Below, piece by piece: positions 5,183 to 59,776 of a stretch of DNA of 64,000 bases. Within the stretch, counting starts at the first letter, position 1. The number at the start of each line of letters is the position of its first letter. The notes under the pieces are model-generated. The model was not told the origin of the DNA. It made no database searches and saw only the letters and a program-made list of their open reading frames with translations. Location: IMG/VR virus record IMGVR_UViG_3300026521_000003, positions 124,001 to 188,000 of that record; one strand, given 5' to 3'. The translations under genes and the position numbers were made by a program.

Positions 5183-5211
5183 AAATAAATAAAATAAAAA
5201 AGGAGATTAAT

Positions 5212-5409
5212 ATGAGAATTTCAAAATTATTTGAATCAGCACCTAGAAAGAAAGGAAAAACTACTGCTAATGATGTAAGAGTGTGGTTAGATAAAATAAA
5301 TAATGGTGAAGCTACTGAAGAAGATATACAATTATATGATGATTTAAAAAGCATATCACGAAAATTAGGTGGAAAAACAACAGTAATAGAAATACTTAAA
5401 GCGATTTAA
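5212..5409 (+). CDS. small late protein, putative head-internal protein
   Basis: AATAAATA and AGGAG upstream; leader MRISKLFE|S. Confidence 0.6.
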   Translation: MRISKLFESAPRKKGKTTANDVRVWLDKINNGEATEEDIQLYDDLKSISRKLGGKTTVIEILKAI

Positions 5410-5433
5410 TATAGGGATATTTATCCCTATATT
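5408..5433. terminator. bidirectional intrinsic terminator
   Basis: aatatagggat-attt-atccctatatt inverted repeat between convergent genes. Confidence 0.7.
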
Positions 5434-5441
5434 ATTATTTA

Positions 5442-6146
5442 TTAAAATATTTTACCTAATAAGACTCTCGATAAATCTTCAAGTTTATATAAACTTACAT
5501 CTTCAAACCAATGTATATTAACACCAGAGCCTTTTAAAAATTCTAACGATTTGAAATATGCATCTCTACGTTTATTTAAAATATCTATATCTAAAGTATC
5601 ATTAGAGTCTACTAAACCATTTTCAATATCTATTTCTGTTCTTTCAATTATTATCTCATTTGGTAAATCAAGAAATATAATATCTGTCGGCATTTTTATA
5701 AATTTATTTGTATTGAGTGCAACTTTTATAAATTCTAGATCGGTTCTACTATTATTATAAAATGCTTGGTATGCTAATGTAGATATAAAATAACGATCAA
5801 ATAGATAATTCGCCTCATCAATTATATTAGTATTTACAATTTGGTTATTGTTGTTAGTAGTTTCATTAATAAGTTTAGTATTTAAAAATAATTCATTCAT
5901 CCAATAGTGACTCATTTCGGATAAAAAATTAGGAGTGTTTACTATTGATAAATCTGGATTTGATGAATTTAATTCATTTCTAATTATAGCTCCAATAGGG
6001 GTAGATGCATTTGGGAATGAAAACCTATTTAATTTTTTCCCATTTGTTCCTTGCATTTGATTCCATACCATTTCAAACGAATCACAAAATGAGGATTTTC
6101 CAGTTTTATCAAGACCTTCAACGGCTATAATTTTATTAATTATCAT
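5442..6146 (-). CDS. tmk: thymidylate (dTMP) kinase
   Basis: P-loop AVEGLDKTGKSS, FP...TPIG..IR, DRYFISTLAYQ, P.DIIFLD. Confidence 0.9.
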   Translation of the reverse strand: MIINKIIAVEGLDKTGKSSFCDSFEMVWNQMQGTNGKKLNRFSFPNASTPIGAIIRNELNSSNPDLSIVNTPNFLSEMSHYWMNELFLNTKLINETTNNNNQIVNTNIIDEANYLFDRYFISTLAYQAFYNNSRTDLEFIKVALNTNKFIKMPTDIIFLDLPNEIIIERTEIDIENGLVDSNDTLDIDILNKRRDAYFKSLEFLKGSGVNIHWFEDVSLYKLEDLSRVLLGKIF

Positions 6147-6240
6147 AATTTAATACCTTTTTATTTTATTTATTTTTTATTTTACAATTTTGTCTAAATA
6201 AAGAATAAATAAAGATAATTAATAAAAACGGAGATTTAAA

Positions 6241-6867
6241 ATGTCTAGACTAATTAATATTCTGAATAAGAATAAAATGATAAAATTAAAAGAAGCCGAT
6301 GAAGAAGCTCCGGCTGAAAATACTGATGAATTAACTTTGGATGATACTTCAGCTGATACTAAAGATCCTGGAGCAGGTGAGGCTCCAGTTGAAGGTACGG
6401 AAGAAGTTCAAGATGATACTACTGAAGATGAAGAAACATCAACTAATGATGAAAAAGACAATATGGATGACGTTCCAACAGAAGAAAAAGATGATATGAA
6501 TACACCCACAGAAGACATTGATAAAGCCATTGAAGAAATGATAGGTATGACGGAAATTCAACATACATCTAGTTCAACGATAATTGATTTTGAGGATGGG
6601 GGACAAGTAATGTTTGTTCATCCAATGGTATCATTAAAAAGTGAAACATTGAATGAAATAATTAAATTGATTATGAAAGACATAACAAAGACTTATGCCT
6701 CAAATAAAGATGAAATAACAGGAAAAGATCTAAATAAAACGAGATATTGGAAAAGTTTGAGTACTCTTATTGAAACTATGGTTAGAAGTCAATTAACAAA
6801 AAGTGATAATATGAATGGTTTGATTGATGAAATTAAACAAGTATTTAAAGTTTTAGAAGTAAAATAA
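6241..6867 (+). CDS. acidic late protein, putative head/prohead-associated
   Basis: AATAAATA upstream, leader ending LKE|A, D/E-rich low-complexity N half. Confidence 0.55.
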   Translation: MSRLINILNKNKMIKLKEADEEAPAENTDELTLDDTSADTKDPGAGEAPVEGTEEVQDDTTEDEETSTNDEKDNMDDVPTEEKDDMNTPTEDIDKAIEEMIGMTEIQHTSSSTIIDFEDGGQVMFVHPMVSLKSETLNEIIKLIMKDITKTYASNKDEITGKDLNKTRYWKSLSTLIETMVRSQLTKSDNMNGLIDEIKQVFKVLEVK

Positions 6868-6876
6868 TAGGATATA

Positions 6877-9117
6877 ATGATGGCTCAACCTTTGATGATT
6901 CAATCAATAGTGACTGATAATAGGATAACTGCAAAATTTTCTGATAACGAATTGCCTAAATATGCAAGGCATGGGGAGTTATATGTTGTTAATGGGATAT
7001 TATACATTTATGTTGATTTAGATAATACCGGTTCAGATATTGGACAATGGTTTCCTATGACATATGAAAAAGAAATTGTTATGTATGTTGAAGCTGAAGA
7101 AAAGAATATTTGGTCATTTCCTATATCATTTTATACTCATAATATACATGTTATTGTATATGATCAAAATGACCGAGTATATACTTCTAATTTTGATTAT
7201 GTTATTAAAAATGGTATAATGACTTTAACTTTTAATGAATTAATATCAGGGAAAGTCTATATTATTATGGATAAAGGATTTGATTGGATTGATTCATCAT
7301 TAATTGTTGCTGATAGAAAATTTGCTATAACATCCGATGAAAATAATTTTTATTATATTGAAGTAAACACCGAAAATTTATCTATTGATAAAAATGGTAA
7401 AATTATTATTAAAAACGATTTATCTGTAAATGGTAATTTAGATATTAATGGTGATTTAAATATTACTGGTGATTTAAAAATAATGGGTGAAAACATTGAA
7501 ATAGAATCTTCAACATTAACTGTTGCTGATAATATAATAACCTTAAATAATGGATTCGTGGGTTCTCCTTTTCAGAATACAGGGATAGAAGTAGATCGTG
7601 GTAGTTTGGGTAAATTAAATATTTTAACATTTAATGAAACGATGGATTATGTGGAGATCCCAGTTATAGATAATGAAGGACTTATTAATCAAGAAGAAGT
7701 AGCTACTAAACCGTTTGTAAATAACTCAATAATGATTGAAACAACTAGAGCACAATCTGCTGAAATTATATTACAAACAAATATTGATAACGAAATTACA
7801 AGGGCACAATCTACTGAAAGTACATTACAAACAAATATTGATGATGAAGTAAATAGAGCACAATCTGCTGAAAGTACATTACAAACAAATATTGATAATG
7901 AAATTACAAGAGCACAATCTGCTGAAAGTACATTACAAACAAATATTGATAATGAAATTACAAGAGCACAATCTGCTGAAACTGTATTACAAACAAAAAT
8001 AGATGATGAAGTTAATAGAGCTATTATAGTAGAAGGTGATATTAATAATTTACAAACTAACTCTAAATCAAATTTGGTTTCTGCTATAAATGAAAACGTT
8101 GAAAGTATTAACATTGAAAAAGGACGTATTGATTCAATCTTATCAGCTAGTGAAGCTGATAAAGATTCATTTGCAGAGATAGTAACGTTGATAAATTCGG
8201 TTGATATTGAAAATGATAATGTTTTCGCTAATTATGTTTTAGTTAATGATGAACGTAGTGCTAATATTGAACAAGCAATATTAGATGAAACTACTAGAGC
8301 ACAATCTACCGAAAGTACATTACAAACAAATATTGATAACGAAGTAAATAGAGCAACTGCAGTTGAGGATAACTTAAATATATTGGTTTCTGATTTATCA
8401 GCAAATCTAGAAACAAATTTTCTCAACAAGTCAACATCAGTCGAACAGATTATAAATCCTAATTTAAAATTAGATGGTTCAATACTGACATGGTCCTTAT
8501 CAACAGAATGGTTTTATTATTCTATAAATGAAAATTTGACTACTATTAACATTAATAGTAGTACAAATATAAACGAATATGTTTATACTATGGATGCTAT
8601 TGAGACTATTAAATTTAATAAAACAGGTCAGATATGGTCATCATTATATGGTAATTTAGAAGATTATTTTTTAGGTATTAATGATCAGTCTAAAGACAGT
8701 TTATTAATTAATGGTTTAAGCGATACACAATTTGTAAGAAGTGACATAGATTATACTATGAATGCAAATTATCATATATTAAAAGATTTAACCGTAGATG
8801 GTACACTTACAGCCGGAACAATAATTGAAACTTCATCTATTAAATATAAAGAAAATGTAAAATTGATAAAATCACCATTAGAAATTGTATCTAAATTAGA
8901 TGGAGTTCGATACGTATGGAAAGATACAAAAAAAGATGATATTGGTTTTATTGCTGAAGATGTTAATTTAGTACTTCCTGAGTTAGTTCAAATTAACGAT
9001 GGAGAAATTGAAGGAATGAATTATTCAAAAATAACTGCTGTTTTAGTTGAGGCTATAAAAGAACAACAAAAACAAATTACAGAATTAATGAATGAGGTAA
9101 AAAAATTAAAAGGATAA
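6877..9117 (+). CDS. tail fibre protein with C-terminal intramolecular chaperone (peptidase S74-type)
   Basis: 18-aa coiled-coil repeats; C-terminal ETSSIKYKENV...LDGVRYVWK...IGFIAEDV..VLPELV...MNYSKITAVLVEAIKEQ. Confidence 0.85.
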   Translation: MMAQPLMIQSIVTDNRITAKFSDNELPKYARHGELYVVNGILYIYVDLDNTGSDIGQWFPMTYEKEIVMYVEAEEKNIWSFPISFYTHNIHVIVYDQNDRVYTSNFDYVIKNGIMTLTFNELISGKVYIIMDKGFDWIDSSLIVADRKFAITSDENNFYYIEVNTENLSIDKNGKIIIKNDLSVNGNLDINGDLNITGDLKIMGENIEIESSTLTVADNIITLNNGFVGSPFQNTGIEVDRGSLGKLNILTFNETMDYVEIPVIDNEGLINQEEVATKPFVNNSIMIETTRAQSAEIILQTNIDNEITRAQSTESTLQTNIDDEVNRAQSAESTLQTNIDNEITRAQSAESTLQTNIDNEITRAQSAETVLQTKIDDEVNRAIIVEGDINNLQTNSKSNLVSAINENVESINIEKGRIDSILSASEADKDSFAEIVTLINSVDIENDNVFANYVLVNDERSANIEQAILDETTRAQSTESTLQTNIDNEVNRATAVEDNLNILVSDLSANLETNFLNKSTSVEQIINPNLKLDGSILTWSLSTEWFYYSINENLTTININSSTNINEYVYTMDAIETIKFNKTGQIWSSLYGNLEDYFLGINDQSKDSLLINGLSDTQFVRSDIDYTMNANYHILKDLTVDGTLTAGTIIETSSIKYKENVKLIKSPLEIVSKLDGVRYVWKDTKKDDIGFIAEDVNLVLPELVQINDGEIEGMNYSKITAVLVEAIKEQQKQITELMNEVKKLKG
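7735..8020 (+). repeat. 54-bp tandem repeat encoding E(I/V)(T/N)RAQS(A/T)ESTLQTNID(N/D)
   Basis: About 5 consecutive near-identical units, with a further copy near 8285-8360. Confidence 0.9.
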
Positions 9118-30015: not shown

Positions 30016-33000
30016 ATGAATAAATTGAAATCTATAATATTAACAGAAGCATCATTAAATGATAAAATAACATCTAGAGCAAAAATAACGTATGATGCAT
30101 TAATAGCAATAATTTTAGCAACTGATGATGGTAAAATCACAGATAAAAATAAAAAAGAAATAGCTGATGAATTAGATATTACTATTCCTACATTAGAACG
30201 GTATATCAAACAAGCAGTCACAAATAAATTTATTAGTTCATCTGGAGAGGTTCTTGACAAATATAAAAAGGAATCTACTGGTAAAGTAAAAGCATCGGGT
30301 AAAGTATCTCAAGCATTAAATGCGAGAGTTAAAAAATTTAAAGCACCAAAAGTTTCTTCTAATAATTTATTTTCTGAACAAGTATTTAAAATGTTATCAT
30401 TAATGGATGGTCAAGCAGCACAGGCAGGTGTTAAAAACTCATTAATGTTGACAGGAGATCCTGGAACTGGAAAAACTTCATTTATTCGTAATTTCGCTAA
30501 ATTATTAGGATTACCTCTTATTCCAATAGAGGCACCTCATATTACAGAAGAACATATTATAAATATACCATTTATGATTATTAGAGGTAATAAAGTAAAA
30601 AAAGAAAATGCTATTATTGAAACTGCTGGAAAAGCAAATTTGGATGATAAACAAGAATTTGATATTGTTCAAGCAGAATCAAATCTAGTCACTAAATTAA
30701 AAGCTATGAAGAATCTTAAACTAAAAGATCAACAACATATTGCATCAATAGCTAGTGATAAAAATTTAAGACCTATATACTTAAATTATAAATCATTAAT
30801 TGATTCAATTAGAGATAGTTACCATTGTATTTTATTTTTAGATGAATATTATAGAAATGATAATATGAAAATCAGAAATATTCTTAGAAATATTTTAAAT
30901 GGGCGAATAGGTAATGATAAAATACCAAAAGGGACATTTATTGTTTATGCATCAAATATGGAAGATGATGGTGTTGAAGATATTCCTATGAATAACGATT
31001 TTGCAGAAATGGAATTTAAAACTCCTGATAGAGAACAATGGTTTAAATATATATTAAATAAATATGAAGAGAATTCAGGAAATGATTATCCTGGTGTAAA
31101 ACTGCAACCAGAAGTTTTTAATAAATTTTATGACGTATTAGAGCAATCAGATTTATCATATGAAGATGCTACAGCAGAAGTTAGAAATTCTCCAAGAAGA
31201 TGGGAGCAAATATTATTATATGTTAATGCATCTTTACCGGTATCAAATATTAAAGAAGCTAGAACATTAATGTCAAATTTACAAGTTAATTTTAGAAATT
31301 ATACTGAAGAAACTGTTTCAAATTTATATCCTAAATTTGAAAAAATGGTAGTTGGATTAATTAAAGAAACTTCAGGAATTGAATTTGATGGACGACCAAC
31401 TAATCAAGTTGATTGGAAAGATACTCTCCAACAACAATTAGAAGTTAAAATTAAATTAGATGGACAAAGTGATTCTGAGAAAGAGGTTAGACAATACGTG
31501 CCTGTTGTTTCGGGTGAACCTGGTATTGGTAAAACGGCGCATATGAGAACGGTAGCTGATGATTTAGATCTCCATTTTATTCATATTGATGTATCGACAT
31601 TAACTAGAGAATCAACTACCGGTATTCCTAAAGCAAGTCAAGCAACAGATATTGATGGTAATCCAGAATTTGATCAAAATGGTAATCCTGTTATGACCAC
31701 AGAATTTTCAAAACCTGAATTGTTAGATTTGATTGAGAAAAAAATGCAAGAAGAATTAGCTGAAGATGAAATGTTTCCAGAAGATCAAAGAAAAAAAGGT
31801 AAAGGTAAATATAGATTTTTATTATTATTTGATGAATTAACAAGAGCAGATGCACAAGTCTTCAATGCTATTAGAAAATTATTATTAGAGAAATCATTTA
31901 ATGAACAATATGATTTACCAAAATCAATTATGACTGTTGGTGCTCTCAATCCAGTTGATAATGGAGCAGAAGAATTAACAAAACATATGAGAGATGTATT
32001 GGATATTATTCCATCTAGAGCATCATGGGCTAAAACAGAATCATACTTATTGAGTGAAGAACGTCCTGTTGGATTAGAAGAAGTTATGGGGTTTGATTTA
32101 AATACTGCAACAGTTGGAGCATTAAAAGGTTTACTACAACAATATCAATCTAAAGATGAAGATTGGAGAGGTAATCCAGTTTCAAAAGAAGAGCGATTAT
32201 TCAATTTACGAGATGGGTCAAATATAATTTATATTTCGCCAAGAGAAATTACGGATATTGTTACTATGACTAATGCTAATATCGTTAATAGATTAACAAA
32301 AGTTGGATTAAAAAGTTTTTCAAATGAAGTTCAATCTGAAGAAGTAGATGGTATGAGTGATGATGAATTTATGCAACTTATGATGCAACAAGCTGAAAAC
32401 CCAGATAGTGTAAAGGAAAAAATTGCTCAAGATAAGGGTATTTTTAATTTAAGAAATAGGTATAGTGAAGAAGATTACGATGTGTTTATAAGAGCTATGA
32501 TTAATGAATTTCGGGAAGCGTGGGCTTCAAAATTAACTTTTATTTGTAAAAAAATGGATATTGATGCGGCAAACGTTTTATCATTAACAACAGGTTTTAT
32601 ATCTACAAATAGTGTAGTATATGATCAATATGAGGCTATTAAAACATTAGTTGTGGATGATGTTAAAAATATTGAAGAAATGTTCGATGCTTATTGGGAT
32701 AATCCAGAAGAATTATATGATTCACCGCATTTTGATAATTATTTAACTGTAAACTTTACAGCTCCTCAAAAATTTACACAAGAAATAACAGATTATTTAA
32801 GTGATAAATTGGTGGAAATTGAACAAGATACTAGTACGGATATGGTAACTGTTGAATCTGAAAATGGACCTGTTGAAATTCCTAAAAATATAGCTAAGAA
32901 GATGGAATTATTTTATAAGTATATTTTATATACAAAGTCAATATTAAAAGTTTTAACTGATAAAAGTGAATATGCAGGGAAAGTAAAAGAGGCTCAAAGA

Positions 33001-33183
33001 ACGGGTCAATATCTAAGTAATCTTCATATCGCATTACAAATGCATGGTAAAGATTTTATGTCTAAAAGTGGATTATTACCATATGTATTAAATAAAAATC
33101 TTGATGCTGATATGGTTAAGAAAGTATCGGAAGCAGGAAATGAAATTAGAACAATGTTAAGTAATTTTGGTATTAAAGGTTAA
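30016..33183 (+). CDS. tandem MoxR-like AAA+ ATPase (two AAA modules) with N-terminal HTH
   Basis: HTH KKEIADELDITIPTLERYIK. Module 1: GDPGTGKT / ILFLDEYYR / VYASN / SPRRWE. Module 2: GEPGIGKT / LLLFDELTR / VGALN / SPREI. Confidence 0.85.
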   Translation: MNKLKSIILTEASLNDKITSRAKITYDALIAIILATDDGKITDKNKKEIADELDITIPTLERYIKQAVTNKFISSSGEVLDKYKKESTGKVKASGKVSQALNARVKKFKAPKVSSNNLFSEQVFKMLSLMDGQAAQAGVKNSLMLTGDPGTGKTSFIRNFAKLLGLPLIPIEAPHITEEHIINIPFMIIRGNKVKKENAIIETAGKANLDDKQEFDIVQAESNLVTKLKAMKNLKLKDQQHIASIASDKNLRPIYLNYKSLIDSIRDSYHCILFLDEYYRNDNMKIRNILRNILNGRIGNDKIPKGTFIVYASNMEDDGVEDIPMNNDFAEMEFKTPDREQWFKYILNKYEENSGNDYPGVKLQPEVFNKFYDVLEQSDLSYEDATAEVRNSPRRWEQILLYVNASLPVSNIKEARTLMSNLQVNFRNYTEETVSNLYPKFEKMVVGLIKETSGIEFDGRPTNQVDWKDTLQQQLEVKIKLDGQSDSEKEVRQYVPVVSGEPGIGKTAHMRTVADDLDLHFIHIDVSTLTRESTTGIPKASQATDIDGNPEFDQNGNPVMTTEFSKPELLDLIEKKMQEELAEDEMFPEDQRKKGKGKYRFLLLFDELTRADAQVFNAIRKLLLEKSFNEQYDLPKSIMTVGALNPVDNGAEELTKHMRDVLDIIPSRASWAKTESYLLSEERPVGLEEVMGFDLNTATVGALKGLLQQYQSKDEDWRGNPVSKEERLFNLRDGSNIIYISPREITDIVTMTNANIVNRLTKVGLKSFSNEVQSEEVDGMSDDEFMQLMMQQAENPDSVKEKIAQDKGIFNLRNRYSEEDYDVFIRAMINEFREAWASKLTFICKKMDIDAANVLSLTTGFISTNSVVYDQYEAIKTLVVDDVKNIEEMFDAYWDNPEELYDSPHFDNYLTVNFTAPQKFTQEITDYLSDKLVEIEQDTSTDMVTVESENGPVEIPKNIAKKMELFYKYILYTKSILKVLTDKSEYAGKVKEAQRTGQYLSNLHIALQMHGKDFMSKSGLLPYVLNKNLDADMVKKVSEAGNEIRTMLSNFGIKG

Positions 33184-33188
33184 ATGAA

Positions 33189-35378
33189 ATGAATTTTTTA
33201 GAAGATATAGAAAATCTAGCTTCAATATATTTAAATGAAGCGGGTTTGAATTATAAACATAAAAAAAAGGGTGAAACCCCCTTTGAAAAAACTGATGGGA
33301 CTGAATTTCATATTCAAACCATACTTGAAAAATTTGCAGAAGCTAATAAAATTACTAAGCAGGAAGCACAACAATATTTTGATTTAAAAAAACAAGAAGC
33401 TATAGATAATATGAAAAAATCTATGAAAATTAATGGTACTATGATTGATAATATTGGTGAGAGTATTGCATTTGAAATGTTGGAATCTATCGAAATAGAA
33501 GATATTAAATTTAATAAACGTACTTTCTTAGATTTATTTGAAAAGGTAAAATATGAAGTGCCAGAATTTTACCCTCTTTCAAATTCATTTGAACCTAGAC
33601 GAATAGAACCAAAAATTGTTTTTGTACCAGATCCATTGTCTCCAGAATATGCTAGTGTAGGTACAGCTGCATGTACACCAACTGCAACATTAATATTTAA
33701 TGTTCCTTTTTTAGAAAATCTTATGAAATTTTCAAATATAAAAGGTCTTAAAGCTAATCCAAATTTTTTACATGGTCAAAAGTATGTATCACAAGGTGGA
33801 GATATTCCTGATGAATATCTGTATTGTGAATTTGTTTTATTACATGAAATTATGCATTATGCTAATGGAGATTTCTTTTTTGAAAAAGCTTTCAATTTAA
33901 ATGGGAAATTAGTCAATTATGTCGGAGATTTCATAACTAATTATAATTTGGTTAAAAGTGGTTATGCTCAATTACCGATAGGTTTATTTAATGATGAAAT
34001 TAATTATGATCGTTATAATTCATATCAAGAAATGTACAATGTAGTTGAAGAAGAAATGAAACGATTATCTGATGAAGAAAAAGAAAAAATGATGGATCAG
34101 TTAGATCAATTAGGTGATGAAATGCCGGATGAGGGAGAAGGTGCAGATCCTGAAAATAAGAATGGACAACCTCAAGATGGACAACCTCAAGATGGACAAC
34201 CTCAAGATGGACAACCTCAAGATGGACAACCTCAAGATGGACAACCTCAAGATGGACAACCTCAAGATGGACAAAATGGTTCTGGAGATGGTGAAAAATC
34301 AGATGATAAACAAGATGGACAAAATGGTTCTGGAGATGGTGAAAAATCAGATGATAAACAAGATGGACAAAATGGTTCTGGAGATGGTGAAAAATCAAAA
34401 GAAGAGTTAGATAAAGAAGCTCAAGAAGCTGAAAAAAGAGCAAAAGAAAGAGAAGAGGCAGAAAATGAAGGTAAAACTTCTGGAACAGTTCCAAAAAGTA
34501 TTGATGATGCCATTAAACAAAATCAACAAATGCAACAAAAAGGTCAAGAAGACTTAGGACGAGAAACAAAACCCGGAATGAATAAAGATGGTATGCAACC
34601 CGGTGATATATCAAATATTATGAAAGGTAATAATAATGGAGGACCGTTAAGTGCTGATGGAAATCCATATGCTCTTCCTGAAAGACAATATAAACCAAAG
34701 TTAAATTGGAAACAAATGCTTAAGAAAATGATACCTAGTGGTACTGATAAAGACGAAACTTATACGAAACCATCGAGACGAACAACTTCATCGATGGTAT
34801 CTATAGCTCAAACAGGTTCTGGTGTTGTTAAACCAGGAATTAAAGAAAATCCTTCAGATAAGAAAGGTTTATGTTTTGTATTGGATGAATCTGGTTCTAC
34901 AATGGGTGCAATTGGTGAAATGAAATCAGCTATCCTAAAACTTATGGAGAAAAATGCAAAACAACTTAATGGTATTATGTATATTATTAAGTTTTCAAAT
35001 GATGTACATTTATTTAAAGTAGATGTTAAAAAGAAAAAATATGGTCGAGTAACAAATATCCAAGAGTTTATTAAAACTGGTAAATCGGATATTAAATGTA
35101 CTAAAAATGCATTGGAATTATTTAAATCTACTTATGGTGGTGGAACAAATTTAAATAGTAAAATTGCTAATATTGTTATTAAAATGAAAACACAATTAAA
35201 TTTTAATACTGTTATATTTAGTGATACAGATATAGCATATGGTGATAATGCTCAAACACTTAAACGTATGTATAAACAATTAGGACCAAAAGCATTTGCT
35301 TTAATAGGTACTGATCTTGAAGATTATAAAGCTTTTGTTAAACTTTTAGGCGACAAAAAAAATATTACTCACTTTTAA
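33189..35378 (+). CDS. HEXXH metallopeptidase-like + acidic repeat linker + vWA (MIDAS) protein (DUF2201-like)
   Basis: TAAC...LIFNVPF, FVLLHEIMH, D..TN, LNWKQML...TYTKPSRR, FVLDESGST, GGGT, VIFSDTD. Confidence 0.85.
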   Translation: MNFLEDIENLASIYLNEAGLNYKHKKKGETPFEKTDGTEFHIQTILEKFAEANKITKQEAQQYFDLKKQEAIDNMKKSMKINGTMIDNIGESIAFEMLESIEIEDIKFNKRTFLDLFEKVKYEVPEFYPLSNSFEPRRIEPKIVFVPDPLSPEYASVGTAACTPTATLIFNVPFLENLMKFSNIKGLKANPNFLHGQKYVSQGGDIPDEYLYCEFVLLHEIMHYANGDFFFEKAFNLNGKLVNYVGDFITNYNLVKSGYAQLPIGLFNDEINYDRYNSYQEMYNVVEEEMKRLSDEEKEKMMDQLDQLGDEMPDEGEGADPENKNGQPQDGQPQDGQPQDGQPQDGQPQDGQPQDGQPQDGQNGSGDGEKSDDKQDGQNGSGDGEKSDDKQDGQNGSGDGEKSKEELDKEAQEAEKRAKEREEAENEGKTSGTVPKSIDDAIKQNQQMQQKGQEDLGRETKPGMNKDGMQPGDISNIMKGNNNGGPLSADGNPYALPERQYKPKLNWKQMLKKMIPSGTDKDETYTKPSRRTTSSMVSIAQTGSGVVKPGIKENPSDKKGLCFVLDESGSTMGAIGEMKSAILKLMEKNAKQLNGIMYIIKFSNDVHLFKVDVKKKKYGRVTNIQEFIKTGKSDIKCTKNALELFKSTYGGGTNLNSKIANIVIKMKTQLNFNTVIFSDTDIAYGDNAQTLKRMYKQLGPKAFALIGTDLEDYKAFVKLLGDKKNITHF
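34164..34397 (+). repeat. coding tandem repeats: 7 x 15 bp (GQPQD), then ~2.7 x 48 bp (GQNGSGDGEKSDDKQD)
   Basis: Perfect ggacaacctcaagat units followed by perfect 48-bp units. Confidence 0.95.
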
Positions 35379-35828: not shown

Positions 35829-38132
35829 ATGATTAAATTATTAAGTGAAGAAGTAGAAAATATTATTAATGTTGCATGGGAAGATGCCGCTAAACGTAAA
35901 CAGGAATATTTATTATTAGAAAATATTTTATTTAGTGCATTGGATAATAAAGAAGTTCAAGATATTATGCATGATTTGGATGTTGAATGGAAAGATTTAA
36001 AAGCTAAATTGGATTCTTTTTTAGAAACAGAAATTGAAAAAGTTGACAATGTACAACATCCTAAGCAAACGATAATGTTTAAGAAGATTCTTCAGCATTT
36101 GATATTTCATTCTCAAAATAGTGGTAAGATTGCTCAAGTCGAAGACCTACTTATTGCGATGTTTAATGAGCCAGAAACTACAGCCGTTTATCTTATGAGT
36201 GAATTCGGTATTGATGAATATGCTCTTAAAGAATTAGCAACAGAAATTCGTCATCCTGAAGATATGGATGAAGATGACGAAGATGAAGATGTAGTTCAAC
36301 CACGTAATAGTAGATCTAAGAAGAAAAAGAAATCTGCATTAGAACAATATGCTATGAATATTACGGATATGGCAAAAGAAGGTAAAATCGACCCTGTTAT
36401 TGGGAGAGATGAAGAGACAGATAGGGTTATTCAAATTCTTTGTAGAAAAAAGAAAAATAATCCACTACTTGTCGGTGAAGCTGGTGTTGGTAAAACAGCA
36501 TGTGTTGAAAAATTAGCATTAGATATTGTGAATGATGATGTCCCTTCTCAAATAAAAGATTGGCAAATTTTTTCTATAGACATTACCGCTATGATTGCAG
36601 GAGCTAAATTTAGAGGTGATTTTGAAAAGAGATTACAAGATATTTTAACTGAGTTAGAAGAAAAAGATAAATGTATTGCATTTTTTGATGAATTCCATAC
36701 AATGTTTGGTCTTGGAGCTAATAGTTCAAATCAATTAGATGCTACTAATATTCTTAAACCTGCTATGATGAATGGTAAAATTAAAATCATGGGTGCTACA
36801 ACATATGAAGAAGCTAAGAATACTGTTGATAAAAATAAACCTATGGCTAGAAGATTTCAAAAAGTAGATATTTTAGAACCTGATGAGGAAACAACATTTA
36901 AAATTTTAAAAGGTTTAAAAAATACATTTGAAGAATATCATAATGTTAGTTACTCTGATAAGATTTTAAAACAGATAGTTTCATTAAGTGGTAAACATTT
37001 AGTAGACAATCATTTTCCAGATAAAGCGATAGATATTGTTGATGAAGTCGGCTCTGTTATAAAATTAGCTACTCAAACAGAAGAAAGAGTTGCAATCAAA
37101 GAAAAAGATATTACTGATTTAATTTCAAGTAAAGCAAGAGTACCAGTAACTATTGAAGATGGTGATGATAAATTAGGATTAGAAAATCTTGAAACTAATA
37201 TCAAAGCTAAATTATATGGTCAGGATCATGCTGTATCAGAAATAGCCGAAAAAGTTATGTTAGCAAGAGCAGGATTAAATGAACCAGGGAAACCTATGGG
37301 AGCATTTATGCTTGCTGGTCCAAGTGGTGTAGGTAAAACAGAATTAGCAAGACAGTTGTCTGAACAATTAGGAAACCTTAAACTACTGCGTTATGATATG
37401 TCTGAATTTATGGAAGAAACTGGTGTAGCTAAACTTACAGGATCTGCTCAAGGGTATGTAGGATATGAAGAAGGAGGAAGATTGATTAATGATATTAAAA
37501 AGCATCCTCATTCTATTCTTTTATTGGATGAATTTGAAAAATCACATCCAAAAATTCAGAATACATTCCTTCAAATTTTAGAAGAAGCAGAATTATCTAG
37601 TTCTGATGGTACAAAAGCCGATTTTAGAAATGTATTTATTTTATTCACTACTAATGCGGGAAGTAAAGTTAGTAAAACTGTTGGTTTTGGTGGTAATGCA
37701 GGTAAATCAAAATCTATAGCAGCTATTGAAAAAGCATTTTCTCCTGAATTTAGAAATAGATTAGATGGTGTAATTCAATTCAATCCATTGGGTGATGAAC
37801 AAGTATTTAAAGTAGCTGAAAAAATACTTAATGAGATAAGAGATCAACTTAAAACTAAAAATGTACAACTTACAGTTACAAAATCAGCAAAACAAGTTAT
37901 GGCTGATAAAGGCTTTGATCCAACTATGGGTGCTCGTCCTATGAAGAGAGTTATTCAAGATCTTATTAAGAAACCAGTAGCAAAAGAAATAGTATTAGGT
38001 AAATTAAAAGATGGTGGTCGAGTTAAGGTTGATACTGATAAAGATGGTGAAATCATTTTAAAATTTACATCTCAAGAAGAATTAAATGTTAAAAAAGATA
38101 AAAAAGAGATTGTTTCTGATAAGGTGGAATAA
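35829..38132 (+). CDS. clpA: ClpA AAA+ unfoldase
   Basis: DPVIGRD, KKKNNPLLVGEAGVGKT, AGAKFRGDFEKRL, FPDKAID, GPSGVGKTELA, DMSEFME, GYVGYEEGG, VGF loop, FSPEFRNRLD, GARPM; no M domain. Confidence 0.95.
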   Translation: MIKLLSEEVENIINVAWEDAAKRKQEYLLLENILFSALDNKEVQDIMHDLDVEWKDLKAKLDSFLETEIEKVDNVQHPKQTIMFKKILQHLIFHSQNSGKIAQVEDLLIAMFNEPETTAVYLMSEFGIDEYALKELATEIRHPEDMDEDDEDEDVVQPRNSRSKKKKKSALEQYAMNITDMAKEGKIDPVIGRDEETDRVIQILCRKKKNNPLLVGEAGVGKTACVEKLALDIVNDDVPSQIKDWQIFSIDITAMIAGAKFRGDFEKRLQDILTELEEKDKCIAFFDEFHTMFGLGANSSNQLDATNILKPAMMNGKIKIMGATTYEEAKNTVDKNKPMARRFQKVDILEPDEETTFKILKGLKNTFEEYHNVSYSDKILKQIVSLSGKHLVDNHFPDKAIDIVDEVGSVIKLATQTEERVAIKEKDITDLISSKARVPVTIEDGDDKLGLENLETNIKAKLYGQDHAVSEIAEKVMLARAGLNEPGKPMGAFMLAGPSGVGKTELARQLSEQLGNLKLLRYDMSEFMEETGVAKLTGSAQGYVGYEEGGRLINDIKKHPHSILLLDEFEKSHPKIQNTFLQILEEAELSSSDGTKADFRNVFILFTTNAGSKVSKTVGFGGNAGKSKSIAAIEKAFSPEFRNRLDGVIQFNPLGDEQVFKVAEKILNEIRDQLKTKNVQLTVTKSAKQVMADKGFDPTMGARPMKRVIQDLIKKPVAKEIVLGKLKDGGRVKVDTDKDGEIILKFTSQEELNVKKDKKEIVSDKVE

Positions 38133-51469: not shown

Positions 51470-51937
51470 GTGAAAATTGAAAAAGATACCATAATGGGTC
51501 AAGTTCTTCATCAAGTTAATGAAGATAAAAAAAATGCAAATATTATTGAAAAAATACATAACCTTATTAATTCGATTGAAGAAGAAGAATATGAGTTTAA
51601 TGATCAATTATGGACTTCATCAGATCTAATAGTTACAGATAAAAAAAATATAAGTTCTAATGATGAATTAATCATAATAACTGAATATGCTTATGAATTT
51701 AGTTGGTTGGTATATAAATTAAATGCAATATATTGTCCAAATAGAGTAACATCCAATAGATTATTTACTACTATCGGTTTTTTATTTGATATTTATATGG
51801 ATAAATATGAGGACATTATGATTGTTCTTAAAATGGTTATATTGGTATCGCTAGTTTGGTTGCACCCAGACCATATAGGACAAGATAAATTTTTAGTACA
51901 TCCGATTGATTTACCAAATTTTGGAAAGGAATTTTAA
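51470..51937 (+). CDS. hypothetical protein
   Basis: 155-aa ORF with hydrophobic C-terminal part. Confidence 0.5.
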   Translation: MKIEKDTIMGQVLHQVNEDKKNANIIEKIHNLINSIEEEEYEFNDQLWTSSDLIVTDKKNISSNDELIIITEYAYEFSWLVYKLNAIYCPNRVTSNRLFTTIGFLFDIYMDKYEDIMIVLKMVILVSLVWLHPDHIGQDKFLVHPIDLPNFGKEF

Positions 51938-52695
51938 AATTTAGAAAAAATATAAATAAATTCTGGTTTCCAATTAAGAATACTTATTCTTTTAGTAATT
52001 TCAAAATCGCCAATTATATTTGTTAATACATCTATAGCATCTTGGTCTTCTCTAATATCATCATCAGTTACCTTATCAAAATCTATATAATCGATAATTT
52101 TATCAAATATACTTTCTGAATTATCTGCAGCTAAATTTAAAAGTATATTATATTTTTCATCTAATGGTAATGACTTCTCTATTTCTAATTCTTTAGATAA
52201 TCCATTTATATCTATAAACTCTTTATAGACCATTAATAAATCTTTTGAGTCATCACTATATAGATTATCTTCTAAGTTTGATCTATGAAATTCTTTAGCT
52301 GTAGCCATCAACATATCGTAATTATATAATTCAAACAGTTCTCCATTTACTTCATATGTTACAGGGTCATCATAAGTAACATTTTCTTCTTTTATTTCAT
52401 TGAATGGTACTAATGTGAATTGGCGTAAAGCCTCAGCCATCTGTAAATTATCAAATAATAAATTTGCTAATTCTAATGTTGCAGTCTCAATATCTAATGA
52501 TTTAGACATTAACACATCTTCATTTATAGTATATTCAGACTGAAAAAACATATCTCGAGCAATAGTAAAATCTTCAATAATTTTACCTAAATTAGTATTC
52601 CATAATTCTAATCTATAACCTTTATAACGTAAAACCTCATCCTCAAATAATACATTTTTTAATTTTAAATACTCTAAATCAATTTCAATATTCAT
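51934..52695 (-). CDS. acidic late hypothetical protein
   Basis: TATAAATA on the minus strand at 52718-25 and GGAG RBS. Confidence 0.6.
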   Translation of the reverse strand: MNIEIDLEYLKLKNVLFEDEVLRYKGYRLELWNTNLGKIIEDFTIARDMFFQSEYTINEDVLMSKSLDIETATLELANLLFDNLQMAEALRQFTLVPFNEIKEENVTYDDPVTYEVNGELFELYNYDMLMATAKEFHRSNLEDNLYSDDSKDLLMVYKEFIDINGLSKELEIEKSLPLDEKYNILLNLAADNSESIFDKIIDYIDFDKVTDDDIREDQDAIDVLTNIIGDFEITKRISILNWKPEFIYIFSKF

Positions 52696-52789: not shown

Positions 52790-54421
52790 ATGGCAGATAA
52801 AAATTATTCAGCTAGTGATATTAAAGTATTAAGTGATCGCGAACATGTTCGTTTAAGAACAGCAATTTACTTAGGTAGTACTGAGGAGACATCATATGAA
52901 GTGCCAATTTTTGAAAAAGATGATATAAAAATTAAGCAGAAATTTTTCATACCTGCAATTTATAAAGCATTTAATGAAATTTCAGATAATGCAATAGATG
53001 AATTGACTCAGCTTGCTAAAAAAGATAAAAAAATATCTTTTGCTCATGATACTATAAAAAATAGATTTAAAGTCTGTGATAATGGTCGAGGTGTACCTAT
53101 TGATATGCACCCTCAAACTGGTAAATATACACCTGAAACCGTTTTTACAGAATTAAGATCTGGTAGAAACTTTGATGATGATGCTAAGGATTCTGGGGTA
53201 ATTGGTACAAATGGGGTAGGTTCATCATGTGTTGCTATGTTATCTGAAGAGTTTTTAGTCCAAATTAAAAGAGATGGTAAGTTTTATGAACAAATGTATA
53301 GAGATGGTACAGCATCAATAGATGAACCAGCAATTAATAATTATAAAGGTAGAGATTCTGGAACGTGTATTGAATTTAAAATTGATACTGCATTACCTCA
53401 ATTTACTACAACGAAAATGGATCCGGAACTAATTCAAAATAGAGTTGTTGAGATTGCACTTAATAATCCACAATTAGATTTATCATATGTTAGAAAACAG
53501 TTAGATGAAGATGGAGAAGAAGAACAAATTCAAGCACATTATGCTTTTAAAGGTGGTATGTTAGAATATGTCAAGCGTGTTTCTGAAAGATTTTTTGAAT
53601 TTAAGTATGACCATGACGAATTTACAGCCAGATACTATGTAATTCTTGACAAATATCAAGGAATAGATGAAAAAATATTCGTATATGTTAATTCATCATT
53701 ACTTTATGAAGGTGGTACAGCTGCACATATGTTTTTTAATACGTTCTTTTCTAGTGTGAATGATGGTTTAAAAAGAGAAATTAAAAAACGTAAAATTGAT
53801 TTAAATAAAAATGATGTTAAACAAAACCTTTTAGTTGTTGCTGATGTTAAGATGAAAAATCCAAGATATGATAATCAATCAAAAACTAGATTAATTTCAC
53901 AAGAGATTAAAAAACATATTGATAAAATGATTGGTGATCAAATTTCAAAATTTTTATCAATTAATAAACAATGGATAGAAGAAATTCTTGATAGAGCCGA
54001 ATTTAGACAACGTATTGCTGATATGGCTGAAGTTAAGAAAAAACAAAAGAAGAAAAAAGGTAAATTGGCAAAACTAATCGATTGTTATACAAAGGATAGA
54101 AGCCAAGCAACAATCGCATTCTCAGAAGGAGATTGTATTGACTCTAACACTAAAATTCATTATGAAGGTGGCATTAAACCAATCAAAGATATTTTAGTTG
54201 GTGAAAAAGTTTTAACTCATGATGGTACTTATCAATTTGTTATTGCTAATAATTCAGTTGAGAAAGAAGAATATATTATTGAATTTGGAGATGAAAAAAT
54301 ATCATTTTCTAAAAACCATAAGCATCCTATTTTCAATACTGAAACTGGAGAGGTAGAGGTAATCGAAACTTATCTTATTAATCCAGAAGTACATAAATTA
54401 CTTAGAAAGAAAGGGTTATAA
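52790..54421 (+). CDS. gp39: type II topoisomerase ATPase subunit (gp39/GyrB-like), N-extein fused to N-terminal half-intein
   Basis: EHVRLR..IYLGS, EISDNAIDE, DNGRGVP, SGRNFDD, GTNGVGSS, SGTCIEF, NQSKTRL, KLIDC, FSEGD, then intein sequence. Confidence 0.92.
   Translation: MADKNYSASDIKVLSDREHVRLRTAIYLGSTEETSYEVPIFEKDDIKIKQKFFIPAIYKAFNEISDNAIDELTQLAKKDKKISFAHDTIKNRFKVCDNGRGVPIDMHPQTGKYTPETVFTELRSGRNFDDDAKDSGVIGTNGVGSSCVAMLSEEFLVQIKRDGKFYEQMYRDGTASIDEPAINNYKGRDSGTCIEFKIDTALPQFTTTKMDPELIQNRVVEIALNNPQLDLSYVRKQLDEDGEEEQIQAHYAFKGGMLEYVKRVSERFFEFKYDHDEFTARYYVILDKYQGIDEKIFVYVNSSLLYEGGTAAHMFFNTFFSSVNDGLKREIKKRKIDLNKNDVKQNLLVVADVKMKNPRYDNQSKTRLISQEIKKHIDKMIGDQISKFLSINKQWIEEILDRAEFRQRIADMAEVKKKQKKKKGKLAKLIDCYTKDRSQATIAFSEGDCIDSNTKIHYEGGIKPIKDILVGEKVLTHDGTYQFVIANNSVEKEEYIIEFGDEKISFSKNHKHPIFNTETGEVEVIETYLINPEVHKLLRKKGL
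54134..54418 (+). mobile_element. N-terminal half of a split intein (95 aa)
   Basis: Block A CIDSNTKI directly after EGD; IKDILVGEKVLTHDG; block B FSKNHKHP; no block F/G (HN) before the stop. Confidence 0.85.
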
Positions 54422-54432
54422 AAACTCTTTCT
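54408..54432 (+). terminator. hairpin overlapping the topoisomerase/intein stop
   Basis: agaaagggtt-ataaa-aactctttct. Confidence 0.5.
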
Positions 54433-54537
54433 CAACCATCTTAAACTCTCATATTATCTTTTCTAATAAACAATCTGAATTCTTTTTAATATATATTTAA
54501 GTTAAATTATAATATAATAATGATAAAGGGTTTTATT

Positions 54538-54738
54538 ATGAAAAAAGAAATTATCATTGAACAATTAAAAAATATAAAAAAGTCAATTGAACAGTCCGCA
54601 AAAGAAGCTGAAAAAGGGTGGTCTAGAGCTTCATGTTATCCAGAAGAAAATGCATATTGTTCTGGTTTAGATAGAGGTATTGAAATATCCTTATATGCCA
54701 TAGATGACCTTATTGATGAACTGAATGAGGACTATTAA
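54538..54738 (+). CDS. small early hypothetical protein
   Basis: TTAAG-N11-TATAAT at 54497-54518; AAGGG RBS before ATG 54538. Confidence 0.6.
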   Translation: MKKEIIIEQLKNIKKSIEQSAKEAEKGWSRASCYPEENAYCSGLDRGIEISLYAIDDLIDELNEDY

Positions 54739-55044
54739 ATGAGTAAACAAATAATTCCATATGGCAATCCAAAAAAATATTTAATATACTCTAGTATTTC
54801 TGATGATATTATAGTGTATGATGCAACAGATGATGAAATTATTGAATATTTTGCACAAGAAGCTGCAGAAAGAGCTAGAGAACAAGCTATGAGTGTATTA
54901 GAAAAATTAGATAATGGCACAAAACCTTATTTTCAGTTTACAAAAACAATAGATGAAGTATTTGAGACTATTGAAATGATACATGGGAAACGAGTATTAA
55001 ATGAAAGAAAAATAGAATTAGGACTTCAAGATGAAAAAGAATAG
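54739..55044 (+). CDS. hypothetical protein
   Basis: 101-aa ORF with GAGGA RBS. Confidence 0.6.
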   Translation: MSKQIIPYGNPKKYLIYSSISDDIIVYDATDDEIIEYFAQEAAERAREQAMSVLEKLDNGTKPYFQFTKTIDEVFETIEMIHGKRVLNERKIELGLQDEKE

Positions 55045-57917: not shown

Positions 57918-58847
57918 TTACTCCCATTTACCACTATTGATTTTAGCTTCTAAATTCTTAAATTGGTTTTTCTTAGCATCATTAACTATTAAGTCCAAAT
58001 AAGTTTCTGGTATTTCTTTATATATAGAATATGCTAACCATTGCATTTGATAGTATGCAGCACCACTTAATCTTAAATCAAAGAAATTCTTTAAACTTCT
58101 TAAATTAATACTAAACATTAAATCTACACTAAATGTATCCGCTATTACAGTACCTTTTACAACGTCACCAACATTTCTCTTAGCTTTAGAAGAAAGTAAT
58201 TTAAAACATTCATCTTCATTACCTTCAAAATTATTAAATTGATCTATTAATGATTTAGCAATGGTAAGTGAAATAAATTTTTCTTCGCCTAATATAATAT
58301 ATTGGTGTTGTAATTTATTGAAAATAGTTCCAAATTCAATTGCATTATAATCTATATCGTCTGTTACTAAAAGACCTTTAAATCGGTTCATTCTATTTAT
58401 AAAGCCACTCGCACCAAGATTGTATTTCATAACTACTAGAAACGTATTAACTAAATCGCTAAGAGTGTATCTAGTTGATTGAACTGAAAATGATGCTATT
58501 CTATGTCTAGCTAATTCTTGCAAAACACCTCTTGAAGTGTTTTTAATATTGAAATTTAGTACTACATGTTCTAATGTACTCTCATGAAAATAAGTATGTG
58601 AAAGGTCGTATAATAATTTACTTCCTTTCTCATTAACGTTTTTTTCTAAAGTTGAAAGAGTATCATTATTTTTAATATAATGGTTTTCTAATTCATCTTC
58701 TAAAGTTAGAATCTCCTGATGTTCTGATTTATCAAAACTATTATAACAAGTTCTCGCTCCAAATTCACTTACAAAGAGTGGTGTAGCGTGTAAGAGAGTA
58801 GCTCTAGGTAAACTATAATTTATACCGTATGCTGTGATTTGACTCAT
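57918..58847 (-). CDS. thyX: flavin-dependent thymidylate synthase ThyX
   Basis: ARTCY.S, HESTLEH, SRGVLQELARHRIASFSVQSTRY, INLRSLKNFFDLR. Confidence 0.95.
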   Translation of the reverse strand: MSQITAYGINYSLPRATLLHATPLFVSEFGARTCYNSFDKSEHQEILTLEDELENHYIKNNDTLSTLEKNVNEKGSKLLYDLSHTYFHESTLEHVVLNFNIKNTSRGVLQELARHRIASFSVQSTRYTLSDLVNTFLVVMKYNLGASGFINRMNRFKGLLVTDDIDYNAIEFGTIFNKLQHQYIILGEEKFISLTIAKSLIDQFNNFEGNEDECFKLLSSKAKRNVGDVVKGTVIADTFSVDLMFSINLRSLKNFFDLRLSGAAYYQMQWLAYSIYKEIPETYLDLIVNDAKKNQFKNLEAKINSGKWE

Positions 58848-58957: not shown

Positions 58958-59776
58958 ATGAGTAATTTATTTCAAACCCTAGAACAGTTATCATCTGATC
59001 TTATGGAAAAATCAAAAAATGCTAGAACAAAAGCTGCAAAATTAGCCTATGAAGATTCTGCTATGTTATTATTAAATGAGATTAATAGGTTGAATAAGGA
59101 AATTGAAGAAGACCAAAAAGCTAAAATAGAAGCTCAAATGAAAAAATTTGATATTCATCATCAAGATTATACAACACTTTTATCGAGAGGCCATATTGGC
59201 ATCCCCAGTAATATTCATGCTGAAATTTCATCATTTACGGTGGGACAAAAGAAAGCAGGAGAAGTTTTTCAAAATTTAAGTGAAGATTATAAACATGATG
59301 TACTAAATCATTTAGCCGCAGATAAAGAAATGATTGAACAATTAGTAGCATACCGTCATAATTATCATTATATTACTCACACAAAAGGTCATGATGGTAT
59401 TGATGAAGATAATAATGTATATGAAGTTAAAAATAGAAAATATGTTTATAAAAAAGATAAACGTGCAAATTGTGATCTTATTTTTGATAGAATTTCAAAA
59501 GCTACTGAAAGAAAATTTCGAGAAGGGCGCCCAACAATTATAATGAATATGACTGATGGTGCAAAATTATTATTAGAAATGAAAATACGTTTTTCAGACG
59601 AATTATTAGATCTTTATAGTGAAAAAGTTGAAGCATTAAAATCATCAAAAACATCTGGATTTGCAATTCCATTTAGTGAATATAAAGATTATATTGAAGA
59701 AATAACTTATGTGTGTAATGATATTGACCAATACCATATACAAAAACAGGTATTGGATTATATAACTTTATCTTAA
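58958..59776 (+). CDS. putative PD-(D/E)xK restriction-like endonuclease
   Basis: E...KGHDGIDEDNNVYEVKNR; early-type promoter at 58910-31. Confidence 0.55.
   Translation: MSNLFQTLEQLSSDLMEKSKNARTKAAKLAYEDSAMLLLNEINRLNKEIEEDQKAKIEAQMKKFDIHHQDYTTLLSRGHIGIPSNIHAEISSFTVGQKKAGEVFQNLSEDYKHDVLNHLAADKEMIEQLVAYRHNYHYITHTKGHDGIDEDNNVYEVKNRKYVYKKDKRANCDLIFDRISKATERKFREGRPTIIMNMTDGAKLLLEMKIRFSDELLDLYSEKVEALKSSKTSGFAIPFSEYKDYIEEITYVCNDIDQYHIQKQVLDYITLS

Follow-up and report, generated by a model that had tools for sequence, protein, structure and literature searches.

A natural split intein at the Toprim EGD motif of a phage topoisomerase II, with its halves encoded in two unlinked genes and predicted to trans-splice

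The 64,000-nucleotide stretch analyzed here (the window; bases 124,001–188,000 of the 289,880-bp IMG/VR contig IMGVR_UViG_3300026521_000003) carries on its plus strand an open reading frame (ORF) for the front part of a jumbo-phage topoisomerase II large subunit that ends in the N-terminal half of a split intein. This ORF, the N-half (52,790–54,421 of the window; contig 176,790–178,421), encodes 543 residues. The first 448 of these, the N-extein (52,790–54,133), comprise the ATPase (GHKL) domain, the transducer domain, and the first motif of Toprim as far as EGD: Pfam HATPase_c and DNA_gyraseB match residues 56–416, residues 3–448 correspond to positions 20–445 of the 661 in phrog_543 ("DNA topoisomerase II large subunit"), and positions 44–434 of the 641 in the NCBIfam GyrB profile PRK05644 are covered. 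At the alignment column where the topoisomerase sequence breaks off, contiguous relatives (∼624 residues) read EGD/EGL-SA..PLxGK..DxDxDG; the N-half reads ...IAFSEGD (residue 448), followed by Cys449 at nucleotide 54,134 and the rest of a 95-residue tail (IntN; 54,134–54,418). An initial annotation, made from the letters of the window without database searches, had placed the switch from a GyrB/gp39-like ORF to an intein at exactly this nucleotide and had named EGD|SA as a conserved Toprim motif that supplies a Ser at position +1, and Pfam, phrog_543, and the alignment agree with it on these points. A TAA stop codon follows IntN directly (54,419–54,421), at a position that is kept in relatives of 530–550 residues, and the hairpin that had been noted beside it, with a 10-bp stem and a 5-nt loop (about 54,408–54,432; −10.8 kcal/mol, z −2.4), spans the stop codon. 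This hairpin is not a canonical intrinsic terminator, and a search for such terminators gave none. The N-half ORF itself contains no endonuclease, as stated initially, and six-frame motif searches and tblastn with Toprim, C-half, and GyrA-like queries came back empty for the rest of the window, where no frame encodes a C-intein, a GyrA-like subunit, or the remainder of Toprim; this bears out the earlier remark that no Toprim remainder lies downstream.

IntN begins with the nucleophile of a class-1 intein, a Cys directly after EGD, and continues with a block A of the form C....T, an N2 motif (GEKVLTH), a block B (S59-K-N-H62, which aligns with SEEH of gp41-1), an N4 motif (HKLL), and a basic tail (RKKGL), all assigned by a profile match to gp41-1 and by invariant residues. 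To build the profile, 15 homologous N-intein tails were taken from loci of diverse lineages related to this one (L014:9485–9970 and L053:8129–8647 are examples). Its best match is gp41-1 (6RIZ/6QAZ; E 1e-10), and behind it come hedgehog Hint domains, PRP8 inteins, and Npu DnaE; the match to DnaE is weak (E 0.1). C1, T6, and H62 are invariant in all 15 sequences, and S59 is at least 90% conserved. Within nine members of the window's clade, C449, T476, H477, S507, and H510 are invariant, and the identity of IntN to its nearest relatives is 46–53%. The initial annotation's assignment of blocks A and B to this tail thus holds, by way of Cys1, the SxxH motif, and the gp41-1 match.

The partner gene lies on the same contig. 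When a degenerate 84-nt DNA pattern (HN|SA-x7-R-x9-LxGK-xx-N), validated on retrieved loci, was scanned across IMG/VR, it matched in 51 stretches, and one of these (L134) belongs to the contig of the window itself. At this place a 410-residue ORF, the C-half, occupies contig positions 59,244–60,476 on the minus strand (L134:5530–6762), ∼116.3 kb from the N-half and on the opposite strand. Its N terminus is a 49-residue C-intein (IntC), MQLNEINIDEFDMVEINSVYSTNKVINMNDIQVEDNETFILENGLLTHN, ending in ...LLTHN; past the intein the sequence reads SAIASFTEIRDPETQAGMPLKGKVLNV ..., PLKGK, and ...IATDADPDG..., and then runs into a TOPRIM_C tail. The initial annotation had predicted two unlinked genes and a C-intein ORF that ends in (H/S)N and leads into SA...PLRGK...DxDxDG, and an ORF of this description, with 49 intein residues ending in THN, is what the contig holds. 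The NCBIfam model TIGR01443 (intein_Cterm) scores 25 bits on the C-half against a cut-off of 15.6, and an IntC profile of 20 sequences matches the 36-residue Npu DnaE C-fragment (4LX3_B) end to end at E 3e-6 and also matches the C terminus of the Spl DnaX mini-intein. His48 and Asn49 are invariant in 20 of 20 IntC sequences, with Ser at +1 (LLTHN|SA). Support for a putative HINT fold comes from sequence profiles on both sides of the split, IntN against gp41-1, hedgehog, PRP8, and DnaE, and IntC against Npu DnaE and Spl DnaX, and the catalytic residues are kept across the two pieces (C1, S59xxH62, D30, H48, N49, and S+1).

The exteins, too, complement each other. The C-half has Pfam matches to Toprim and TOPRIM_C and corresponds to positions 504–638 of the phrog_543 profile and to positions 405–471 and 490–630 of the NCBIfam GyrB profile. 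By alignments and profile coordinates the two exteins abut with no gap or overlap, and joining them at EGD|SA restores the EGDSA of the contiguous relatives; the spliced product would, by calculation, have 448 + 361 = 809 residues. The GHKL ATPase, the transducer, and the Toprim domain (E..DxD) are all present only when both ORFs are combined. The C-half as modeled by AlphaFold 2 (AF2) resembles most closely, in structure, the central domain of phage T4 topoisomerase II (8YO4_C, E 8e-13); the Toprim domain is modeled with confidence and IntC residues 1–49 with low confidence (10-residue block means 41–52), which is what one half of a split intein should give on its own. The length of the C-half, 410 residues, is due to a clade-specific insertion of ∼175 residues inside Toprim (residues about 108–280, between the GL motif and IATDADPDG). 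This insertion is kept in about 57 relatives (motif FHFRRxWDxRGFRK), and neither contiguous relatives nor other split lineages have it; AF2 models it with confidence as a beta-rich domain (pLDDT 82–92). With neither a nucleophile nor HN ends, it is not itself an intein.

Both halves are conserved, and so is the distance between them. Searches of independent ENA, JGI, NCBI, and Logan assemblies found about 59 N-half relatives (530–550 residues, 58–82% identity, full coverage including IntN) and about 57 C-half relatives (about 410 residues, 48–77% identity). In the genome GCA_029935755.1 (JAPOGX010000001.1, 496,182 bp), the N-half is at 194,784–196,418 on the plus strand and the C-half at 78,075–79,310 on the minus strand, 115.5 kb apart, on opposite strands, and with the same neighbors as in the window's phage; in metagenome 3300035665 each half is on a large contig of its own (L135 and L106). 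The gene block around the N-half is kept (w325-w264-w221-w155-N-half...w293-w312...ThyX-like), as is that around the C-half (ClpP, a gene for a 182-residue protein, the C-half, a DUF7487 gene, and a gene for a 1094-residue protein). Since the stop codon of the N-half and the start codon of the C-half keep their positions in dozens of assemblies, the arrangement is not a recent decay, nor is it a pseudogene or a misassembly, the outcomes that the initial annotation had named as fatal to its prediction. In a contiguous relative (L002), ClpP lies a few genes upstream of the topoisomerase gene; on this basis we speculate that the C-half probably marks the ancestral locus and that the N-half was relocated.

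Taken together, one genome holds two complementary intein-carrying ORFs whose exteins make up one complete type IIA large subunit, with intein motifs in both and with conservation of both. We conclude, with a probability of about 85%, that a naturally split, gp41-1-like class-1 intein breaks the large subunit of this phage topoisomerase II after the EGD of Toprim and that the halves associate and trans-splice; the intact catalytic residues are what leads us to infer the splicing step. In the proposed sequence of events, the two polypeptides would be made from separate transcription units, and the acidic IntC and the basic-tailed IntN would associate into one HINT fold; the net charges (−4 for IntN, with its basic C-terminal tail, and a strongly acidic −9 for IntC) would be compatible with electrostatic capture. 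Cys1 would then form a thioester, Ser+1 would attack it, and Asn49 would cyclize, releasing a contiguous 809-residue large subunit with its EGDSA catalytic motif restored, in the way that the fragments of the gp41-1 and DnaE split inteins associate and trans-splice. Because the split separates the catalytic Glu of Toprim (in EGD) from the DxD metal site, neither half should work before ligation.

Some observations weigh against this conclusion. As a single sequence, IntN stays below the Pfam and NCBIfam intein thresholds (Pfam Hint, E 0.002–0.1) and matches the gp41-1 structure 6QAZ only marginally (E 0.006). Block B has Ser where Thr is canonical, although this holds for the SxxH of gp41-1 as well. 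Finally, a GyrA/gp52-like subunit was found neither in the window nor in 11 kb around the C-half; the ORF for the 1094-residue protein near the C-half was examined as a candidate and rejected, having no Pfam match and a match only to a PHROG of unknown function.

We also weighed the possibility that the intein halves are a non-covalent docking module, by which the two polypeptides would assemble into a working topoisomerase without being spliced. There are parallels for this, namely T4 gp39/gp60 and the NrdA fragments of phage Aeh1, which are kept together by domains derived from a mobile element, and phage enzymes that are made in fragments and assemble without ligation are on record (PMC3045599). 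However, Cys1, SxxH, the block F Asp, the His-Asn pair, and Ser+1 are all kept across lineages in which intein identity is down to ∼25–50%, which counts against docking because docking alone would not require these residues; moreover, an unspliced HINT domain of 144 residues would separate the catalytic Glu of Toprim from the rest of the fold. We therefore regard docking without ligation as improbable.

More improbable still is that the N-half is a decaying remnant, a non-functional topoisomerase gene cut off by a degenerate intein. Within the window alone the gene does look truncated, with no partner in sight, but the partner is present on the same contig, dozens of relatives, with identities as low as 48–58%, have both ORFs intact over their full length, and the arrangement is kept in a second genome, GCA_029935755.1. 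That the contig comes from a metagenome assembly raises the further question of whether a misassembly broke a contiguous intein-containing gene in two. An artifact of this kind would have to account for the N-half's own in-frame stop codon and the C-half's own ATG, found at the same positions in independent assemblies, and for the synteny kept on both sides of each half, and its probability is close to nil.

Across IMG/VR, 35 distinct IntC junctions at EGD|SA were left after false matches and duplicates had been dropped. In 30 of them the N-extein ends 0.5–2.1 kb upstream on the same strand (the "fractured gene" arrangement), and the halves either nearly abut or flank a member of one homologous family of 320–480-residue ORFs. 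For three groups, at least the first 4.8 kb upstream of the junction lack an N-half: L134/L117 (the window's phage and a near-identical contig), L106/L126 (its clade relatives), and L045/L100/L156; the remaining two of the 35 were not placed. The window does not have the fractured-gene arrangement, as neither the 9.5 kb that follow the N-half nor the 52 kb that precede it contain a C-half. Searching proteins with the Toprim portion of a contiguous relative turned up, in addition, many C-half proteins of ∼240 residues (M..ELVDI..NMVDI.VEDDESFIL.NGI.SHN|SA.S.. followed by the Toprim remainder). EGD|SA is thus a widespread split-intein site in the topoisomerase II genes of uncultured phages, with halves that are usually adjacent, and the unlinked layout is specific to the window's clade. 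That the known contiguous GyrB inteins of cells might occupy EGD|SA was also considered. This is not supported by a scan with the same junction pattern of 185,579 prokaryotic genomes, one for each species: it found no contiguous cellular GyrB intein at EGD|SA, and its three true matches were all phage-like split C-halves.

The ORFs that lie between the halves at fractured loci (L043:8800–10026, L053:8703–10004, L056:8655–9968, L063:8920–10014, L091:10528–11925, L109:5241–6689, L064:9040–9999, and L118:3172–4215) have no Pfam match. They share repeated ..KYG.. modules, and the one in L118 (L118i) has a C-terminal ..DFY..VEFNGHAWH motif that is Vsr-like by eye; the family is probably an endonuclease that targets the EGD|SA site.

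Among solved structures, the closest relative of IntN is gp41-1. Both inteins come from uncultured phages and sit in host proteins of DNA replication, and they share Cys1, SxxH, the terminal HN, and an IntN of ∼90 residues; gp41-1, too, has a Ser at +1. The sequence match to gp41-1 covers only residues 4–71 of the IntN profile, and there are further differences: the host of gp41-1 is a cyanophage-like gp41 helicase rather than a topoisomerase II interrupted at the Toprim EGD|SA, its IntC has about 37 residues as compared with 49 here, and an endonuclease gene is all that separates its adjacent halves, which here lie 116 kb apart on opposite strands. Another phage topoisomerase II large subunit made as two polypeptides is that of T4, which consists of separate gp39 and gp60 chains held together non-covalently; the T4 case differs in having no intein, another split point, and non-covalent assembly.

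Separate loci have a precedent in the split intein of DnaE, an essential replication enzyme whose two halves are encoded apart (PMC2677866). Ssp and Npu DnaE share this layout with the topoisomerase intein, and the C-fragment of Npu DnaE is matched by the profile of IntC; by contrast, cyanobacterial DnaE is cellular rather than phage-borne, has Cys at +1 and another host protein, and is only a weak match to IntN. The fractured genes described by Dassa et al. (2009) interrupt gp41 helicase, IMPDH, DnaE, NrdA, NrdJ, DNA ligase, and terminase, and the words topoisomerase, gyrase, and GyrB are absent from that paper (PMC2677866). Those genes resemble the 30 of 35 EGD|SA junctions with nearby halves, many having an intervening ORF. 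The window's clade differs from them in being unlinked and in having an endonuclease-like gene after the C-half, not between the halves. Contiguous GyrB inteins such as the Ssp GyrB mini-intein, known from bacteria and archaea, interrupt the same GyrB/type IIA host superfamily but are unsplit; 33 bacterial GyrB inteins have been reported, all contiguous (PMC4760082). A split PolB intein has been described from a jumbo phage (PMC6892783).

The element is therefore a genuine natural split intein at topoisomerase II, whose splicing is predicted. What is new is the host protein and the insertion site, the Toprim catalytic motif of a type IIA topoisomerase, together with the size of the family and the stable unlinked arrangement on opposite strands of a phage genome. 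The initial annotation knew of no described natural split intein at this site, and our search of the full-text literature likewise found no published split intein in a phage topoisomerase II, although novelty is unproven to the extent that most subscription journals lay outside that search.

Natural split inteins are few and heavily used for protein ligation, and the best of them (gp41-1, NrdJ-1, and IMPDH-1) come from uncultured phages. With dozens to hundreds of natural variants, the EGD|SA family provides material for orthogonality screens. To our knowledge, the unlinked split-intein layout was until now a hallmark of cyanobacterial DnaE; here, phage halves lie 116 kb apart on opposite strands and are kept so across diverged genomes. 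Side by side, the unlinked clade and its adjacent, fractured relatives at EGD|SA show how the breaking of a gene has advanced, stage by stage, in a single gene family. A wider proposal, which we put forward tentatively and hold to be on the doubtful side, is that the EGD|SA split inteins form a large, uncatalogued, gp41-1-like Ser+1 family, with short and long IntN forms and some three-piece enzymes that have a second intein in DxDxDG; that unlinking in the window's clade makes assembly of the enzyme depend on co-expression of distant units, as a post-translational timing switch; and that the family could yield several mutually orthogonal, fast ligation tools.

Two forms of IntN occur at EGD|SA, a short one of 95–114 residues (the window's type) and a long one of 155–182 residues, exemplified by P0072 and P0078, which has an extra C-terminal module of ∼65–75 residues repeating an S..H...H-like pattern. 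Two phages (L014:8222–11176 and L045:7777–10363) divide the topoisomerase II large subunit into three pieces, and their second split intein interrupts DxDxDG (..TDAD|C-IntN2 and IntC2-..SHN|CDG.., with Cys at +1); in L045, pieces 2 and 3 flank a 466-residue ORF that has an NPPY methyltransferase-like motif. The latter phage also has an IMPDH/GuaB-like gene (by eye; L045:5573–6352 and 6571–7242) that is split by an intein (..GGGSA|C... and ..VVHN|CTTS..), much like the fractured IMPDH genes that Dassa et al. (2009) described.

The DUF7487 gene directly follows the C-half in four of four clade genomes (L134:3802–5523, minus strand; L166:7237–8511; L106; and L126). It matches the PHROG homing-endonuclease family phrog_3339 (E 4.5e-24), has repeated KYG modules, and has diverged faster (35–55% identity) than its neighbors; homology to the family of intervening ORFs at fractured loci was considered and is not supported (hhalign probability 1%). 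Next to the N-half, the window has a gene for a 253-residue protein upstream (51,934–52,695, minus strand) and genes for proteins of 72 and 101 residues downstream (54,520–55,044). These immediate neighbors have no counterpart in a relative genome (L003), so that the closest surroundings of the N-half are variable, and the wider block is syntenic.

Elsewhere in the window, which has a G+C content of 27%, the genes at 2,435–9,117 encode tail proteins of myovirus type (tail sheath stabilizer, baseplate wedge, and fiber), that at 35,829–38,132 a 767-residue ATP-dependent protease (phrog_4871, E 1e-232), and the ORF at 57,918–58,847 a protein whose homolog in a relative genome (62% identity) has Pfam Thy1. 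No close cultured relative was found, and megablast of the N-half gene against GenBank phages gave no match. Two other ORFs have matches of unusual layout: in a 729-residue ORF (33,189–35,378) the match to an HNH-endonuclease PHROG is stretched (residues 160–607 against profile positions 48–310), and a 1055-residue ORF (30,016–33,183) has two separate AAA-ATPase matches (residues 36–182 and 494–651). Either of these could carry insertions.

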